64,000 nucleotides of DNA from Octopus sinensis (lineage: Eukaryota): positions 74,896,001-74,960,000 of the forward strand of contig NC_043007.1 of NCBI RefSeq assembly GCF_006345805.1. Reading direction: 5' to 3'. The notes beneath the pieces are model-generated. The model made no database searches. It was not told where the DNA came from and worked only from the letters and a program-made list of their open reading frames with translations. The position numbers and the translations under genes are program-made. Below, one piece after another: positions 2,635-60,153 of the stretch. Every line of letters begins with the position of its first letter. Positions within the stretch are counted from its first letter, which is position 1.

Positions 2635-3319
2635 GTAAGTAAATGACTAATATATTATTGTATATTATTGTATATGTTATCAATTTAACACAAACAATAC
2701 CTGACTTCAAATAGAAAAGGAAAAAGAAAAAGAAATTCCTACACAATGTAGGCTTTGTTATTTTAGAGAATCATTCCTGCCATGAATTAAGATTTTATTT
2801 TAAGTAGCAATTCAAATATTTAAATACTGTTTGCTTCAATAATATCCACTTTGTTTAGGATGTTCATTGCTATAGAAGTGCTTCAAATCTGGATTTTCTC
2901 AATCTGCTTAAACATAAATAGTTTGAGAAGTAAGTTTCGGAAAATGATATTAGGTAATGGAAGAATAAGAATTTTCATTTTTGTATCATACATAAGAAAC
3001 CCCACAACAAATTAAGAAAGATTTGAGTAAAATTGAGATTAAAACAATAGATGCAGGCAGCATATGAACACAAGCTGCGGCTGTGTGGTTGAGAAGTTTG
3101 CTATCAAACCATGGGGTCTCAAGTTCAACCTCACAGCATGCTACCTTAGGCAAGTGTCTTTTACTAAACCCCCAGGCTGACCAAAGCCTTGTGAGTGAAT
3201 TTGGGAGATAGAAATTAAAAGAAGCCTGTTGTATAGTCCTCCAGATCATAACAGAAATTTAAGACTGGTTACCCACCTTTAAAACCCCCATTTTATTAAA
3301 AATTATTTTTATTTTTCAG

Positions 3320-3479
3320 TTATTTGCAAGGTAATGGATACAAGCCCTGCCCACTGGATTTAAATACAATCCATTTGAATGAAAAGATGGAAGAACTAGT
3401 TGATCTTCTTGCTGAAAACACTCATAATGTTTGGGCAAAAGATCGCATTAAACAAGGCTGGACATATGGACTTTGTGAG
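3320..3479 (+). CDS. RyR: RyR exon (RY repeat 2): [14 protein letters not shown]...[24 protein letters not shown]
   Basis: tttttcag acceptor, gag|gtacta donor, phase 2 to 0. Confidence 0.95.
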
Positions 3480-9631: not shown

Positions 9632-9728
9632 GCAAGAAAATGGTTCCAAGGTTCTGAACCTTATGGGAAATGTTGGCAAGCAGGAGATGTTATTGGTTGC
9701 ATGTTAGATCTTAATGATTTTATCATAA
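9632..9728 (+). CDS. RyR: RyR exon (SPRY2): ARKWFQGSEPYGKCWQAGDVIGCMLDLNDFII
   Basis: T-rich tract then aag acceptor, gtaagt donor, phase 0 to 1. Confidence 0.93.
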
Positions 9729-14372: not shown

Positions 14373-14492
14373 AACTAACATCACACCAGCATTAAAAATT
14401 TCTTCAAAAAACTTTGGTACTTTGGAACACGTATGCTTGGAATACGTTCGCCTAAGTTTACCAGTAACTTGTATGGAAGAATATGTTGCTAG
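14373..14492 (+). CDS. RyR: RyR exon: TNITPALKISSKNFG...EYVRLSLPVTC
   Basis: ttttcag acceptor, ag|gtaagt donor, phase 2 to 2; RLSLPV hallmark. Confidence 0.93.
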
Positions 14493-16561: not shown

Positions 16562-16734
16562 GGACAGAACCATCCAGTCTGAAATAGATCACAAAATGAA
16601 TTTAGAAAATATTCGACGTCATGAAATGGACATTGAAGAGGAGAGAAATGCTTATGCTGATATGCCAGGCCAGAACTACAGCGATGCCAATATAAGTGAT
16701 GCTTCAGTTGAAAAAGGAAGCAAAGTAATTGCTG
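16562..16734 (+). CDS. RyR: RyR exon (SPRY2-SPRY3 linker): DRTIQSEIDHKMNLENIRRHEMD...GSKVIA
   Basis: tttttag acceptor, g|gtaagt donor, open frame, phase 2 to 1 bridges flanking exons; sequence itself is divergent. Confidence 0.85.
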
Positions 16735-36320: not shown

Positions 36321-37377
36321 TGGATATGTAAGTAGAAAGCTCCGAGATGATAGTAACATTGATCACCTAAGAAGTTTATGAAGGACCAATAGCCGAATTA
36401 CTACCTCCCACTTTGAAGGGTATGTGTTTGCAATCCAGGAACAGGAAATATCAACCAAGCACTTGATGCACAAAAGGGATAGAGATGCAAGAAAGCAGTA
36501 AAATGTGACAACTGATGCAGACTTTGTGGAGTTAACACTGAAAATATCACCCATATCATAAGCAGTTGTCTGAAAATGTCATCATGGTACTATCTACCGA
36601 AGACATGATGTGGCTAGGACACTCTATAATGAAATCTGTTGAAAGGATAACCCCGAGGACAAAGAAATGAGAACCCACAATATGGTAGAAGCCACAGCCA
36701 CTCATAATAAAAAAGAGTACTGGTGGAATGTCCCAGTGAAGACCTCAATAAAATGTAAGCACAACAGATCTGATGTAATGGTTTGGGATAGAGAATAGAA
36801 GCTGTACACAACTGTGGAAATTAGCTGCCCAGCAGATGTTAACATAAAGCTGAAGATCAGTGAAAAAGAGAACACATACGCTGAACTATTGAGAAATCTG
36901 AAGTTACTCTATCCAGATTACAAGTTCAGGTTTATACCCGTAATTATTGGGGCATTGGGATATGTAATACACTGCCTAAATACCAATTTTGAGAAATTAA
37001 GCTTCTCGAAACCAAAAAGAAGAAAACTAATTCGAAGACTACATAGCCAATCCATCACTAGAACTGTAAAACTTTCATTTAGATATATACGAGCATGTCT
37101 AGATATGCAACTATATGCATGAGAATACATACATAAAGCAAAACATACAAATCTGCACACATACATACATACATACATACATACATACATACATAATACA
37201 TACATACATACATACATACATACATACATACATACAAACAAACAAACAAACAAACAAACAAACAAACAAAAAATACCCTGCTGTTGATGTTGAAATTCCA
37301 ATGAAGGAGTCTTGATTCTAGGTTAGAAACGAGCTTTTTCTCTGTTGGCAAGAAATCTTGAAATAAACTGAATAATG
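36321..37377 (+). mobile_element. 5'-truncated RLE-type LINE (R4/Dong-like) within (TACA)n
   Basis: CRLCGVNTENITHIISSC knuckle at 36516; RSDVMVWD..VEISCPADVN..EKENTY..FIPVIIGALG endonuclease. Confidence 0.85.
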
Positions 37378-38102
37378 ACATACATGCATGCATACATACA
37401 TACATACAGGCATACATACATACATACATACATACATACAAACAAACAAACAAACAAACAAACAACAAACAAAGTAGAGTTTATGATATATATATCTTAT
37501 TCAAGTAATTCATTTATGTACTTGGTTTGCAAGATTCTTGGTGTAAACATATATGTTAAAACATATTTCATTGTATTTCATATAGGCATAATGATCCTTT
37601 CATTATTCAAATTCATTTAGTCACAAAATATACAAATGCTTTAAAAGATGTAGGAGAAAACTATAGGACAATTCATCTAACATGATAAATAAATATGAGT
37701 TTTAAGGTTGTTTGTTTGAACACTCAAACCTTGAAATGAATACTTATCTCTTCTAATTACCATCATTAAAAGAAATTTATTCAAATTAAGTAAAACTAAT
37801 TTAAAAAGCAAACATAATTCAATTTTCAAAGAAAGCTTTCATTAAATTGAATTTTTTTTTTCAGTGTTTTTTTTTTCAACCTAAACTCTATGAAAATCTT
37901 GCATGATTAATTGAATTCTCTTTCACTTGCACTTTCAAACTACGACTCTTTTGGTTTATTGGATATTAATTTTTCAATAACAAAGCATCAATGTTTTCAT
38001 TATTATTACTATTATCATTATCATTATCATTACTATTATTATTATTATTTGCATTTTGCTTGTCTTTCTTTTTTTTTTTTACATCTCTTTCTCCATCTCT
38101 AG

Positions 38103-38159
38103 CTGATGATTTCTTCCCACGACATATAAATGGTGGCCCTGAGTTAACATTAAGGAAAT
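38103..38159 (+). CDS. RyR: Candidate RyR cassette exon 2 (57 nt): ADDFFPRHINGGPELTLRK
   Basis: About 45-nt pyrimidine tract then ctag acceptor, t|gtgagt donor, phase 1 to 1, no stop. Confidence 0.7.
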
Positions 38160-38263
38160 GTGAGTCCTTGGTTTAGAAAATAAAAACAATAGCAAAATGT
38201 AGAACCTTTATCATTGTAACCCTGGTCACGTGTGTGATCTTTTGGTTAGTTATGTGCTATGTA

Positions 38264-38303
<40 letters not shown>

Positions 38304-39986
38304 ATGTTGTTTAATTATTTGTAACCCTGTACATATGTGTAGAATATAGTTAAACACAAATGTGATTTTTTTTTCTGGCAAGCATGAAGATGATGTTAAT
38401 TCCATAACTTTAATTTATAGAATTTTCTTTTTAAAAATTCAATTTTACATTTCTGCAAATAAATTCTAAAATTGGTGGTATTCAACGTGTATTTTATGTT
38501 TATTGAGTGGCTGTTTAGTTCAGTGGTTCTCAACCCACTAAATACCAGTTACCCCAACCCCACAAAAAATGTATTAGTGAATGTATTTTTTTTTATATCC
38601 CTACCCCCTATCATTATTAAAGAGAGGGTTCACATTCTGCCATGGTCGACTTTGCCTTTCATCCTTTCGGGATTAATAAATTGAGTACCAGATGCATACT
38701 GGGGTCAATCTAATCGACTGGCCCCTTCCCCAAAATTCTGGGCCTTGTGCCTAGAGTAGAAAAGATTATTAAAGAGAGGGCAGAACAGATTTTGCCTCTA
38801 TATAATTCTGCTTGCTTTGCTATGATATCAGACAATTTTTAAAAACTACCTCAAATATATTAGGCATCATGATTTGTCCATCTTACTTTCAATCTTCACT
38901 GACACCCCGCCCCTTGGCAGGATTCTAGGAAATGTTGGATTAGCTGACATTGTTTAATTTTATTAAGACATTCATTATAACATTATATACTGTTTCATTC
39001 ATTATAACATTATTATACAGTTTTCATCAGGAGAAAACAGTAACTTACTGCATTGCTGCATTGTTGGTTACCAACATCTGTTGGTAGGCAGATACAAGCT
39101 GAGAATCTGCCTACCAACTAATGTCATTTTAATTTTTATGCTTTTTTCAAAATCCTATGAAAATTAGAATCTCTTATGGATAGCTTCCTTTTCTCAGCAT
39201 ACTTTCAACAAACCATTTTAAAGGTCTTTCTGATTTAAAGTCTTAAGCAGAAGTTTTATTTGTTTTTTATAACACATAAGGTTACTTTAAAGAAATTTAA
39301 GGATGATTTGGGGTCCACAAAAGATAAATTCCTTTCTAAATATCTATTTGTAATGTTAACCAATTCTTTACCATTTCTTAGTGCTGTATATTTTGTGACT
39401 GCTCATCAATTCTCATTATCTTCATTGTTCCATTTAGTTTCTGAAGTCATCATTGCCTTAATTATTGTTTGGTTATGTCATTGTTTGCTTCTGTTTCAGC
39501 AATGCATGAGGTTTTTTGTTGTATGATTCTAACCCAATTCTCCATTGCATATTATTGTTAATTTCTCAGTATTTTTTAATGTCACATTGATAACTAATTA
39601 CAGCAATAAGAGCTAAATATTACTAATTAAGTGCTCGAAAATATTGAACTGAATCAATTTCACTTGACCAATTTTCTTAAATGTGTTACTATTTTCTTTG
39701 AATGTAGGATGTTAAAACTTAAGATAAATGTAATATTACTTTGAGCTTAAAAACAAACTCATTTCAAAAATAATTTTTTTAATTTCTGAAAAGACTGTTA
39801 AGATAAGAATTTATCAAATTGGAAAATGGACAACATTTGTTAAAAAACAAACTAATAACAAATAATAATAATCCTTTCTTTAATAGGCACAAGGCCTGAA
39901 GTTTGAGGGAGGGGATTAGTCAATTATTTTGATTGGTACTTATTTTACCAACCCCAAGAGGATGAAAGGCAAAGTTGACCTTGGAC

Positions 39987-40034
<48 letters not shown>

Positions 40035-40653
40035 GGATTTCAAATTTTGGCACAAGGCCAGTAATTTCAGGGGTGGTGGTAAGTCGATTATATTGTCTCC
40101 AGTGCACAACTGGTACTTATTTTGTTGACCCTGAAAAGCAAAGTCAACCTTGGCAGAATTTGAACTCAGAATGTTAATTCAGATGAAATTCCACTAAACA
40201 TTTTGCCTGGCATGCTAACAATTCTACCAGCTCACCACCTTAATGTTTTCTATTATAGGCTCTAGGCCTGAAAGTGGGTGAGAAAGGGCTAGTCAATTCT
40301 GTCGACCTCAGTGCTATACTGGTGCCTATTTCTTCAACTTCCAAAAGGATGAAAGGCAAAGTCAACCACGGCAGAATTTGGCTGCAGAATGGCCTACACT
40401 CTCAGAGTGGTTGGCATTAGGAAGGGCATCCAGCTGTAGAAACTTTGCCAAATCAAGATTGGAGCCTGGTTCAGCCATCTGGTTCGCCAGTCCTCCATCA
40501 AATCGTCCAACCCATGCTAGCATGGAAAGCAGACATTAAACGACAATGATGATGATGATGATGATGAATGTAAAAACAGACCAAATTCCACTAAGTGTTT
40601 CCTCTGGCATGCTAATTATTCTGCTACTTATTTCCTTAATAATAATAATAATA

Positions 40654-41362
40654 GCAAGCACTTAGAACAAACTACATAAAATACAGAATAGACAACACAT
40701 CAGAAAGTGATAAGTGCAGAATCTGTGGACAAAATGGTGAAACCATATGGCATATTACCAGCCAATGTATGCCACTAACCCAGAAGGAATATAAGAGATG
40801 CCACAACAATATAGCCAGCCTTGTCCATTGAACACTTTGCAACAAGTATGATCTTGACAGAGCAAAAAATTGGTACGACCATAAACCTGAAGGCATTGTT
40901 GAAAATAGAAATGCAAAGATCCTTTGGGATTTTATGATGCAGTGCAACCATGAGATAGAGAATAGGAAGTCAGACACAGTCTTAATTGAGAAAGAAAACA
41001 AACTATGCTGGATCATAGATATAGCATGCCCAGCTGACAACAAGGTATGCAATAAGGAAGAAAGAAAAGTCAAGAGATATGACAGGTTAGCTCAGGAAGT
41101 TAAGCAGTTGTGGTCGATGAAAAAGGAAGCAGTAGTACCAATAATTGCCAGAGCCCTGGAGACAGTGAGCAAAAATCTTGAGAAGTACGTGGAACAAATA
41201 AGGGCTGCAATAAGGGTGGAGCACTTGCAGAAAACCGCACTGCTTGGAACCACTTGAATACTCCAGAAGGTGCTCAAAAAATAAGAGGTGTCACTTTAGT
41301 TAACTGGTGGTGAACAGCTGACACTGTAGTACCTCTCCAGCGTTAGAAGCTGTGCAAAGGCG
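40654..41362 (+). mobile_element. 5'-truncated RLE-type LINE (R4/Dong-like) within (TAA)n
   Basis: CRICGQNGETIWHITSQC at 40715; ILWDF..RKSDTVLIEK..IIDIACPAD..K.KRY; two in-frame TGA; (TAA)n on both sides. Confidence 0.88.
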
Positions 41363-44304: not shown

Positions 44305-45082
44305 CACTTCATCATGACTATGCTGGTGACGAATCTCTGTCTGATGCTGATCAAAGAAGAACATCCTTTTTGAGGAACAAAAATGCCCACCATTCTTTAG
44401 ATGAACCAACTCTGCATGATTCTAGTCTTCCCGGCATGAAGACTGCAGCGAGTGAATCTCATTTGGTCGACGGTTATTTAGGAATTGATAATGAGAGAAA
44501 GAAATCTACTTCCAAACTTTCTCTTTTGGCTGAAAAACTCAGTGATCCAAAGGCCAGCAAAGCAGCTAAAAATTCCAAGTCACCATTTGCAACACTGTTT
44601 CGAAGATCAAAATCCAGGGAACCTTCTCCAACTCCTCGAGATGTGAAATCTAAAACACTCGATTCATTGAAACCTGGCAAACTTGGCAGGTCTCAACGCT
44701 CCAACAGATCTATAGCTGGTTCTCAGAATATGCATAAGGGTGATGTGGAAGGTGGCAGCCCTGCAATTAATATCGAAGGTCCTGATGGATTGATTCCATA
44801 TGAGTTTCAGGATGTCAAAGATATACACCATGGATTCAGCAATGTCTCTATGGGTTCCGACTATGAAATGTCCGAGGCTGAAATTGCTGAAATGAATGCC
44901 TTGACTGAAACAATGCATGAATATTACTATTCTGTACGCATCTTCCCTGGGCAGGACCCCAATCAGCTATATGTTGGTTGGGTCACCCCTGGCTTTCACA
45001 TGGGAGGCAGGTCCTTCGATATGAAGAAGATCAGGAATGTCATCATCTCAACCCAAGATGTAGAATATAAATACAGACAAAG
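44305..45082 (+). CDS. RyR: RyR large exon (778 nt): Ser/Lys/Arg-rich linker then SPRY3 (YYYSVRIFPGQDP...VGWVT)
   Basis: ttttcatag acceptor, ag|gtaatc donor, phase 1 to 2; matches ORF 44292-45086. Confidence 0.95.
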
Positions 45083-50886: not shown

Positions 50887-50968
50887 TTTCTATGATGGCT
50901 GTCTACATACCAGAAGAAGATAGTTGTCTTGATGTGCTAGAGCTTATAGAACATCCATTATTACTGAA
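50887..50968 (+). CDS. RyR: RyR exon: SMMAVYIPEEDSCLDVLELIEHPLLL
   Basis: tttcag acceptor, gtaatt donor, phase 1 to 2. Confidence 0.93.
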
Positions 50969-51431: not shown

Positions 51432-52787
51432 TCACCCTGCCATGTAAAAAGCACTGGTGCTGGTGCCATGTAAAAATCACTGGTGCCACATAAAAAGCAC
51501 TGATGCTGGCATCTCATAAAAAGCACTGATGATGGTGCCACAAAAAAAAACACTGGTGATTATGCCTTGGAAAAAGCACCTGTGCTGATACTACATAAAG
51601 AACACTGTTGCTGTTGCATATAGAAAAGCACTGGTTCTGGTTCCACATAAAAGGCACCATTACTGGTACCACATAAAAAGCATTGTTGCTGGTGTCACAT
51701 AGAAAAGCACTGGTGCTGGTGCCACATAAAAGGCACTATTGCTGGTACCACATAAAAGGTACTGTTGCTGGTGTCACATTAAAAACGCCAGTGCTGGTGC
51801 CACATAGAAAAGCACTGGTGCTGGTGCCACATAAAAGGCACTATTGCTGGTACCACATAAAAGGTACTGTTGCTGGTGTCACATTAAAAACGCCAGTGCT
51901 GGTGCCACATAGAAAAGCACTGGTGCTGGTGCCACATAAAAGGCACTATTGCTGGTACCACATAAAAGGTACTGTTGCTGGTGTCACATTAAAAACGCCA
52001 GTGCTGGTGCCACATAGAAAAGCACTGGTGCTGGTGCCACATAAAAGGCACTATTGCTGGTACCACATAAAAGGTACTGTTGCTGGTGTCACATTAAAAA
52101 CGCCAGTGCTGGTGCCACATAGAAAAGCACTGGTGCTGGTGCCACATAAAAGGCACTATTGCTGGTACCACATAAAAGGTACTGTTGCTGGTGTCACATT
52201 AAAAACGCCAGTGCTGGTGCCACATAGAAAAGTACTGGTGCTGGTGCCACATAAAAGGCACTATTGCTGGTACCACATAAAAGGTACTGTTGCTGGTGTC
52301 ACATTAAAAACGCCAGTGCTGGTGCCACATAGAAAAGTACTGGTGCTGGTGCCACATAAAAGGCACTATTGCTGGTACCACATAAAAGTACTGTTGCTGG
52401 TGTCACATTAAAAACGCCAGTGCTGGTGCCACATAGAAAAGTACTGGTGCTGGTGCCACATAAAAGGCACTATTGCTGGTACCACATAAAAGGTACTGTT
52501 GCTGGTGTCACATTAAAAACGCCAGTGCTGGTGCCACATAGAAAAGTACTGGTGCTGGTGCCACATAAAAGGCACTATTGCTGGTACCACATAAAAGGTA
52601 CTGTTGCTGGTGTCACATTAAAAACGCCAGTGCTGGTGCCACATAGAAAAGTACTGGTGCTGGTGCCACATAAAAGGCACTATTGCTGGTACCACATAAA
52701 AGGTACTGTTGCTGGTGTCACATTAAAAACGCCAGTGCTGGTGCCACATAGAAAAGCACTGGTGCTGGTGCCGCATAAAAAGCACAC
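51432..52787 (+). repeat. 26/27-bp monomer array with 105-bp higher-order repeat inside a (GAT)n-tailed retroposon
   Basis: HOR starts at 51791, 51896, 52001, 52106, 52211, 52316, 52420, 52525, 52630, 52735 (partial); decayed monomers 51432-51685; retroposon tail to about 52960. Confidence 0.93.
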
Positions 52788-53144: not shown

Positions 53145-53266
53145 CTTTCATGCACGAACCCTGGATTTGTACCAAGCAGTATGTTCTCACGGCAATCACC
53201 GAGTTGCCCATGCACTCACAAGACACATTGATGAGAAACAATTATACTATTGTATTGAAAGTGAAT
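53145..53266 (+). CDS. RyR: RyR exon: FHARTLDLYQAVCSHGNHRVAHAL...CIESE
   Basis: ccacag acceptor, gtaagt donor, phase 2 to 1. Confidence 0.95.
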
Positions 53267-55126: not shown

Positions 55127-55202
55127 ATATGTCAGGTCCTTTAAGACATGGATTCCATGGTTTACTAATTTCTATGCACATGGAGTATCACAGCAAAGCC
55201 AG
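55127..55202 (+). CDS. RyR: RyR exon: MSGPLRHGFHGLLISMHMEYHSKA
   Basis: aatcag acceptor, ag|gtaaga donor, phase 1 to 2. Confidence 0.93.
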
Positions 55203-56724: not shown

Positions 56725-56901
56725 GTTTATGACTCAGAATGAATACATCATACCCCGCAGTGAAAAAACCAGAGCCTTAACTTTATATCGTAAACCAGTC
56801 GAGGCAGCTTCAGTCAAATTAAGTGATACTATACCAAAAGTGGAAGATAGTGTATCAATTCGTCCTTGCCTTTACACTACTGAGAAAGAAATTGAAGACA
56901 G
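56725..56901 (+). CDS. RyR: RyR exon: FMTQNEYIIP...SIRPCL...EIED
   Basis: ttcccag acceptor, ag|gtatgt donor, phase 2 to 2. Confidence 0.92.
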
Positions 56902-59250: not shown

Positions 59251-60153
59251 GTATGTAGTCTTTTAGTAATTGCATAAGGAACATAATTCTAAACAACAAT
59301 AAAAAGAGAATATTACAGAACATAACTTTTTTTCATTTTTAGTATTACTAACGTAACTAGTCCAGGTATAAAAAAATATTTATGCCTGTATATATGTTCT
59401 TTATGTTCTTAATTTCGTGAGTTTAATTTTTTATTATTTCATATATTATTGGCACTAATGAATTTATCATCATCATCATCATCATCATCATCATCGGTAG
59501 CGGCAGTGGTGTCATCATCATTGTCATTATTTAACGTCCACTTTCTATGCTGGATGGTTTGACAGGGAACCAGTGAACTGCAGGGATCCGTTGAGTTCCA
59601 ATGTCATTTTTGGCATGGTCTCTATGGCTGGGTGCCCTTCCTAATGCCAACCACTTTACAGAGTTTACGGTGTGTACTAGGTGTTTATCTTGTGCCACCA
59701 GCACTAATGTGGTTACCATGTATCTTGGAAGAAAGAGATTGGGAAAAGTTCCCACTACTAAGAGGAACATTTGGGAGAGGGGGAGATGTGTGGCCAGGTC
59801 TATACCTGGTGTTGAAAGGCTAAAGTGTGATAAAGGTGCAAGCTGAAGGAGACAAGAGGTAACCAATTGTTATAAAGTCTTTGGCATTGGGGAATGTAAC
59901 AGGCTTAGGAACCATACCAAAGCAGACTTTGGAGCTTGATGCAGTCCTCCATGGTGGCATGAAAATGATCGTTAAATGATGGTGGTGATGATGATACAAT
60001 TTTGCAGACCAAAAACATCAATGCTTTTTCCGTTCATCTAATGCACACACCCACACATCTAGTTCTTACCATAGTTTGATCTTCTTTTGACCTCTTGCTA
60101 AAACAACACTTCCCAGCACTTACTTAAGTAGTGCTGATTCTACACACACACAC

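Follow-up and report, generated by a model that had tools for sequence, protein, structure and literature searches.

Small optional exons are well known from genes for ryanodine receptors (RyRs). Insect RyRs vary by optional exons of 12-45 bp and by a mutually exclusive pair in SPRY2, and mammalian RyRs have several small variants (PMC3989282, PMC3342285, PMC8301844). The optional exons of Bactrocera dorsalis are ASII (45 bp), ASIII (12 bp) and ASIV (24 bp), an exon c is described from Cnaphalocrocis medinalis, and inclusion of the insect optional exons varies by tissue and stage (PMC3989282, PMC3342285, PMC8301844). In mammals, ASI/ASII of RyR1 and the small alternative exons of RyR2 are few-residue insertions or deletions that tune channel behaviour (PMC8301844). 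No splice variant among those described in PMC3989282, PMC3342285 and PMC8301844 falls in the linker between SPRY2 and SPRY3, and our literature search found nothing on cephalopod RyR splicing.

The locus considered here lies in a 64-kb stretch of DNA (hereafter the window) that is AT-rich, with about 30-40% GC and abundant microsatellites, and whose + strand is a long stretch of a mollusc gene for RyR, a calcium-release channel. Exons ~3300-3479 and 5042-~5190, when joined, match the full Pfam profile PF02026 (RyR; E = 9.4e-34). Joined exons from 8152 to 47269 are collinear with human or mouse RyR2 (E = 3.8e-111) over 1102-1314, which covers SPRY2 and beyond, and over 1424-1562, which is SPRY3; RyR2 1653-1740 is aligned contiguously by the later exons 55127-55202 and 56725-56901. 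The host gene is a ryanodine receptor by both its RyR repeat domain and its collinearity with solved RyR structures (SPRY2, SPRY3 and handle). Its closest relatives in the protein collection were exon-sized open reading frames (ORFs) from mollusc genomic contigs.

One upstream exon of this gene is of separate interest. By position and size, the 97-nt exon at 9632-9728 (+; ARKWFQGSEPYGKCWQAGDVIGCMLDLNDFII) appears to be the equivalent of the insect SPRY2 a/b mutually exclusive exon. No second copy of it was found in the window, so the insect mutually exclusive pattern is apparently not shared here.

The candidate cassette exon lies between exons C and D of the gene model, which has the following features:

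14373-14492, + strand: exon B (TNITPALK...EEYVA), with two codon bases at its end
16562-16734, + strand: exon C, the upstream constitutive exon (R-DRTIQSEIDHK...GSKVIA), with one codon base (G) at its end and a GTAAGT donor
16735-44304, + strand: host intron, 27.6 kb, phase 1
37999-38049, unstranded: (ATT)n microsatellite, period 3, 17 copies, family D2, directly upstream of the pyrimidine tract
38056-38102, + strand: pyrimidine tract and AG acceptor, AG at 38101-38102
38103-38159, + strand: candidate cassette exon, 57 nt (3 x 19), phase 1/1, (A)DDFFPRHINGGPELTLRK(S), composite score 20.9
38160-38165, + strand: donor GTGAGT, preceded by AAT
38262-38300, unstranded: (TAT/ATT)n microsatellite, ~100 nt downstream of the candidate donor
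44305-45082, + strand: exon D, the downstream constitutive exon (LHHDYAGDES...EYKYRQ), with two codon bases (CA) at its start

The preliminary description of this locus had reported a strong pyrimidine tract with its AG, a 57-nt stop-free exon followed by a GTGAGT donor, phase 1/1 and a Ser that exists only on inclusion, and each of these elements is present in the sequence. The tract, tttgcttgtctttcttttttttttttacatctctttctccatctctAG (before the AG also given as tttgcttgtctttcttttttttttttacatctctttctccatctct), reaches 38102. Within it, TTTAC could be a branch point, judged from the yUnAy consensus only; its A, at 38081, precedes the 3' splice site by 21 nt. At the upstream junction, G|CT encodes Ala and is followed by the stop-free DDFFPRHINGGPELTLRK, and at the downstream junction with exon D at 44305, T|CA encodes Ser and is followed by LHHDY. 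When the candidate exon is skipped, the junction codon is G|CA (Ala). This codon arithmetic at both junctions bears out phase 1/1: both junction codons of the candidate exon are sense, and inclusion and skipping both preserve the frame. Peptides of the predicted inclusion isoform are PELTLRKSLHHDY (containing the junction Ser), ADDFFPRHINGGPELTLRKS and SLHHDYAGDESLSDADQR.

Our main reading is that 38103-38159 is a splice-competent, frame-preserving optional exon of the mollusc RyR gene, probably lineage-restricted and used in some transcripts, to which we give a probability of about 50%; its actual use we infer from the sequence. The donor of exon C (16734) would be spliced to the AG at 38102, and the candidate's GTGAGT (38160) to the exon D acceptor (44305). 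Inclusion would then insert 19 residues, DDFFPRHINGGPELTLRK plus the junction Ser replacing Ala, into the linker that separates SPRY2 from the SPRY3 core. This linker is long and shows little conservation, and a loop of this kind should accept an insertion without disturbing the fold. The protein context favours this reading. The first ~200 residues of exon D form a divergent Ser/Lys/Arg-rich linker and its 3' end encodes the start of SPRY3; within exon D, the alignment to RyR2 1424-1562 is confined to the C-terminal part. Exon C together with the first ~200 residues of exon D (query 214-477) had no alignable counterpart in any solved RyR, and this segment, which contains the insertion point, corresponds to the mammalian divergent segment that is absent from solved RyRs. 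Because the linker lacks alignment to solved structures, it is probably exposed. The exon-level homologs P0001-P0033 begin at the exon D acceptor.

The candidate was scored with position weight matrices (PWMs) derived from splice sites of the host gene whose placement was confident (21 acceptors, 21 donors). The candidate acceptor scored 10.1 bits, compared with -1.0 to 15.0 bits (median 9.3) for real acceptors under leave-one-out, and among the host intron's 1490 AGs just 3 reached this value. The donor, in which the T at -1 is off consensus, scored 6.0 bits, compared with 2.3 to 12.3 bits (median 7.4) for real donors; 6 of the 21 real donors fell below it, and 55 of the 1543 GTs in the host intron reached it. 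By these gene-specific matrices, the splice signals on both sides of the exon look functional. When sites had to reach the lower quartile of the real ones, the host intron retained just three open pseudo-exons that preserve the frame: the candidate, a fragment of 21 nt and a microsatellite. With the candidate's own splice scores as thresholds, each further + strand match in the 64-kb window had the acceptor of a real exon as its anchor, and no - strand match appeared in any frame.

Codon usage was assessed by a log-likelihood ratio contrasting 1086 coding codons of the host gene with intronic triplets. The candidate obtained +4.8, which places it at the 98.3rd percentile of equal-length stop-free intronic windows and, among real-exon windows, at the 74th. 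Adding the acceptor, donor and coding terms gave a composite score of 20.9, higher than 56% of 18 real exons (leave-one-out) and 78% after length normalisation. Across the + strand, among loci that had not been used for training, 56725-56901 (31.9) alone scored above the candidate. Below it came 59343-59365 (18.9), which is out of frame and superfluous to the gene model, and then 55127-55202 (18.6) and a poly-Asp/Gly tract (18.3). Both 56725-56901 (FMTQNEYIIPRSEKTRALTLY…) and 55127-55202 (…SGPLRHGFHGLLISMHMEYHSKA) are genuine + strand RyR exons outside the training set; they align to RyR2 1653-1740, and the scan therefore does detect real exons. The candidate thus ranks between two genuine RyR exons. 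No other unannotated stretch on the window's + strand looks as exon-like, so the label of cassette exon candidate given in the preliminary description was fair, and its interpretation is partly supported. In practice, cassette-exon candidates can be ranked with models that have learned from the exons of the gene in question.

The intron surrounding the candidate contains many microsatellites, SINE-like repeats and retroelement ORF fragments. Two of these ORF fragments (36799-37119 and 40655-41254, +) are of similar type (…ISCPADxN…KxxEKxxxY…) and look like tails of a retrotransposon ORF; 40655-40828 gave only a weak Pfam zf-RVT hint (E = 0.0026), below the cut-off. A short interspersed element forms an inverted pair at 38640-38771 and 39866-39984 (core ...GACTTTGCCTTTCATCCTTTCGGG...), 0.5-1.8 kb downstream of the candidate exon. 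Its translation, 'FAFHPF(R/G)V(D/N)KLSTS', is found again at many places in the window, and the copy at 39920-40174 has an (ATT)n run inside. Further downstream, the intron between exons 50887-50968 and 53145-53266 holds a minisatellite (51438-52785) of 12.5 copies of a 105-nt unit with 93% matches, a 26-nt sub-period and a long open frame (KALVLVPHKRHYCWYHIKGTVAGVTLKTPVLVPHR…). A single TGCATG occurs at 37900, ~200 nt upstream of the candidate exon; we gave it no weight because one such match is expected by chance.

We also considered where the exon sequence might have come from. The window contains just one copy of the 205-bp core that the (ATT)n arrays at 37999-38049 and 38262-38300 enclose, and it has no paralog of the candidate peptide, so the candidate derives neither from exonisation of a repeat copy nor from exon duplication. 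A repeat or transposon origin was ruled out by the single-copy core, and a duplicated or mutually exclusive exon by the lack of a paralog of either the candidate or the SPRY2 exon at 9632-9728.

The orthologous intron measures 7 kb in one mollusc (L004) and about 0.8 kb in another (L002/L003), versus 27.6 kb here. Exon C of L004 is 63% identical and has the same phase-1 donor (...KVIA-G|gtatgt); it is joined across the 7-kb intron to an exon D that begins GA ATG AGC. The same phase-1 C-to-D junction is present in L002/L003, and on this comparison it is the direct joining of C to D that is conserved. Searches of the complete orthologous introns of these two molluscs (tBLASTn, tBLASTx) found no counterpart of the candidate exon. 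A deeply conserved cassette exon is ruled out by these empty introns; as both molluscs are distant (exon D ~40% identical), the negative result excludes only an exon of that kind. In L002 (9996-10018, and in L003), the pyrimidine tract before exon D contains TGATGATTTCTT, which equals the 12 nt of the candidate exon after its first base. As homology, this 12-nt identity was rejected, being at chance level (tBLASTn E = 12).

Protein-level searches covered a much larger set of sequences. The inclusion isoform (exons B and C, the candidate and exon D), searched against 5.8 billion proteins, retrieved only exon-D-sized ORFs from genomic contigs; for the host gene this collection holds exon-level genomic ORFs only, and the source species is absent from it, giving low power for inclusion. 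The best exon D match (P0001, 81% identical) came from L001, a 1060-bp genomic Logan contig that was the only cephalopod contig found (1 kb) and whose intron flanks are unrelated. No protein among the 5.8 billion clusters shared three 5-residue words with the 42-aa junction peptide. HMMER searches with the genomic ORF 38060-38173 against 1.84 billion representatives returned only unrelated LRR-type or other repeat proteins (P0037-P0039), and no JGI metagenome contig matched a degenerate DNA pattern that encodes FFPRHINGGPE. In the literature, neither the candidate peptide nor its tryptic fragments were found in any paper. The preliminary description had staked its reading on a transcript or homolog containing the peptide, and all searches for one were negative, which is a low-power test.

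These negative results also fit the main alternative, in which the candidate is an unused pseudo-exon. In a very long AT-rich intron, a T-rich low-complexity tract beside an (ATT)n microsatellite would then by chance be followed by an AG, a stop-free run of 19 codons and a GT; the splicing machinery would ignore or repress the segment, and it would be functionless. We consider this a serious possibility, at a little under even odds, since no search returned a homolog, a transcript or a conserved counterpart. Long introns hold many good-looking false exons, and at permissive thresholds the host intron contains 62 frame-preserving open pseudo-exons. Third-order Markov simulations of the intron yielded 0.1 pseudo-exons per phase at the candidate's splice scores (0.085-0.1 per intron; 8.5% of simulations), and 0.01 were expected in the required frame class when the codon term was added to give the composite score. 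The rate from real sequence was higher than that of the composite simulation: three combinations at two - strand loci equalled or exceeded the candidate's composite score, which amounts to ~0.07 for the host intron and class (3 combinations over ~122 kb, 9 frame classes). One of these decoy loci is a poly-Asp tract and the other a repeat, and the splice sites of both are poor, whereas all three score components of the candidate are good, and there was no + strand real-sequence decoy with a composite score as high. The antisense of the candidate locus also scores high (composite 20.3, with a high coding term), and the coding term therefore partly reflects base composition. Chance assembly is further favoured by the pyrimidine tract, which adjoins the (ATT)n microsatellite and may be its by-product; the T at -1 of the donor counts against the optional exon. 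Chance assembly fits less well with a candidate that no other unannotated object on the + strand equals in exon-likeness and that scores above more than half of the real exons under leave-one-out. The candidate exon itself defined every threshold, post hoc. The after-the-fact p-value of roughly 0.01-0.1 marks the candidate as modestly more than chance, which is suggestive but not decisive.

Use by the spliceosome need not imply a role in the protein. The candidate could serve as a stepping-stone or decoy exon for removing the 27.6-kb intron in two steps, or be a rare noise exon. The great length of the intron, which the candidate splits into 21.4 kb and 6.1 kb, and the strong splice signals are compatible with such a use, but the locus lacks a recursive site of juxtaposed AG|GTAAGT, and both frame preservation and coding-like codon use would be superfluous to it. 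We regard this explanation as very improbable.

Any function of the candidate exon, phosphorylation of the junction Ser included, is speculation. The preliminary description had proposed that inclusion could add a basophilic-kinase site, and a site of PKA/PKC type at the junction (LRK-S-LHH) would act as an isoform-specific switch. The Ser codon does exist only on inclusion, the R at -2 and the Leu at +1 fit a minimal R-x-S-hydrophobic pattern, and the surrounding linker is rich in Ser/Thr and Lys/Arg. What stands of the proposal is this minimal R-x-S, a motif that is very common by chance: in the junction T-L-R-K-S-L, position -3 is Leu, so that the Arg which PKA, CaMKII and Akt sites classically have at -3 is missing and the sequence departs from the R-R/K-x-S/T consensus. 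Moreover, the constitutive flank already has R-x-S/T and [RK][RK]-x-[ST] motifs three times each, among them RRTSF, RKKST and RRSKS. RRTSF (44350-44364, +), in exon D, is a classical basophilic-kinase motif 19 residues downstream of the junction, 17 residues inside the exon. It is found in P0001 (identical) and P0018, with RRKTF in P0002 and P0012, all mollusc homologs. Given this recurrence in several molluscs, every isoform carries a stronger basophilic site 19 residues away, and by its sequence RRTSF is a better candidate for a regulatory site than the junction Ser. A weak added site beside a conserved strong one would make no compelling switch, and the proposal further depends on the candidate exon being real; we consider the kinase switch very doubtful.

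A broader version of the same idea would be that the divergent RyR linker carries a micro-insertion, specific to cephalopods and regulated by tissue, in the region equivalent to mammalian DR2, with a phospho-acceptor Ser at its junction through which splicing and kinase signalling would jointly tune calcium release. The mammalian DR2 segment is implicated in coupling to the voltage sensor. We rate this scenario as highly unlikely.

How the candidate relates to the described systems differs from case to case. Intronic pseudo-exons resemble it in that it is an acceptable AG...GT pair in a long intron. Typical pseudo-exons, however, do not score like real exons on all measures while keeping frame, and the candidate keeps frame and scores like real exons on all three; if it is nevertheless a pseudo-exon, it has no importance. 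The mammalian RyR1 and RyR2 variants lie in other regions of the protein and are experimentally established, whereas the candidate is predicted. With the insect a/b exons (IASI/ASI), the candidate shares alternative splicing in the N-terminal SPRY region of an invertebrate RyR, but those are a duplicated pair inside SPRY2 and the candidate has no paralog.

The closest likeness is to the insect optional exons, which are also short and frame-preserving, belong to a single invertebrate RyR gene and fall in inter-domain linkers. Those exons are known from cDNA clones and the candidate, here, from genomic sequence alone; there is no sequence similarity between them, and their positions differ, the insect exons being located between SPRY3 and RIH2, between RyR repeats 3 and 4 and near the RIH-associated domain, and the candidate in the SPRY2-SPRY3 linker. 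If real, the candidate would add one more isoform of an invertebrate calcium-release channel, at a linker position without a variant reported in the papers cited above, and would offer a handle on cephalopod diversification of the single RyR gene that is also useful for annotation. Such an exon would not be surprising, because the RyR genes of insects and mammals carry several small optional exons.
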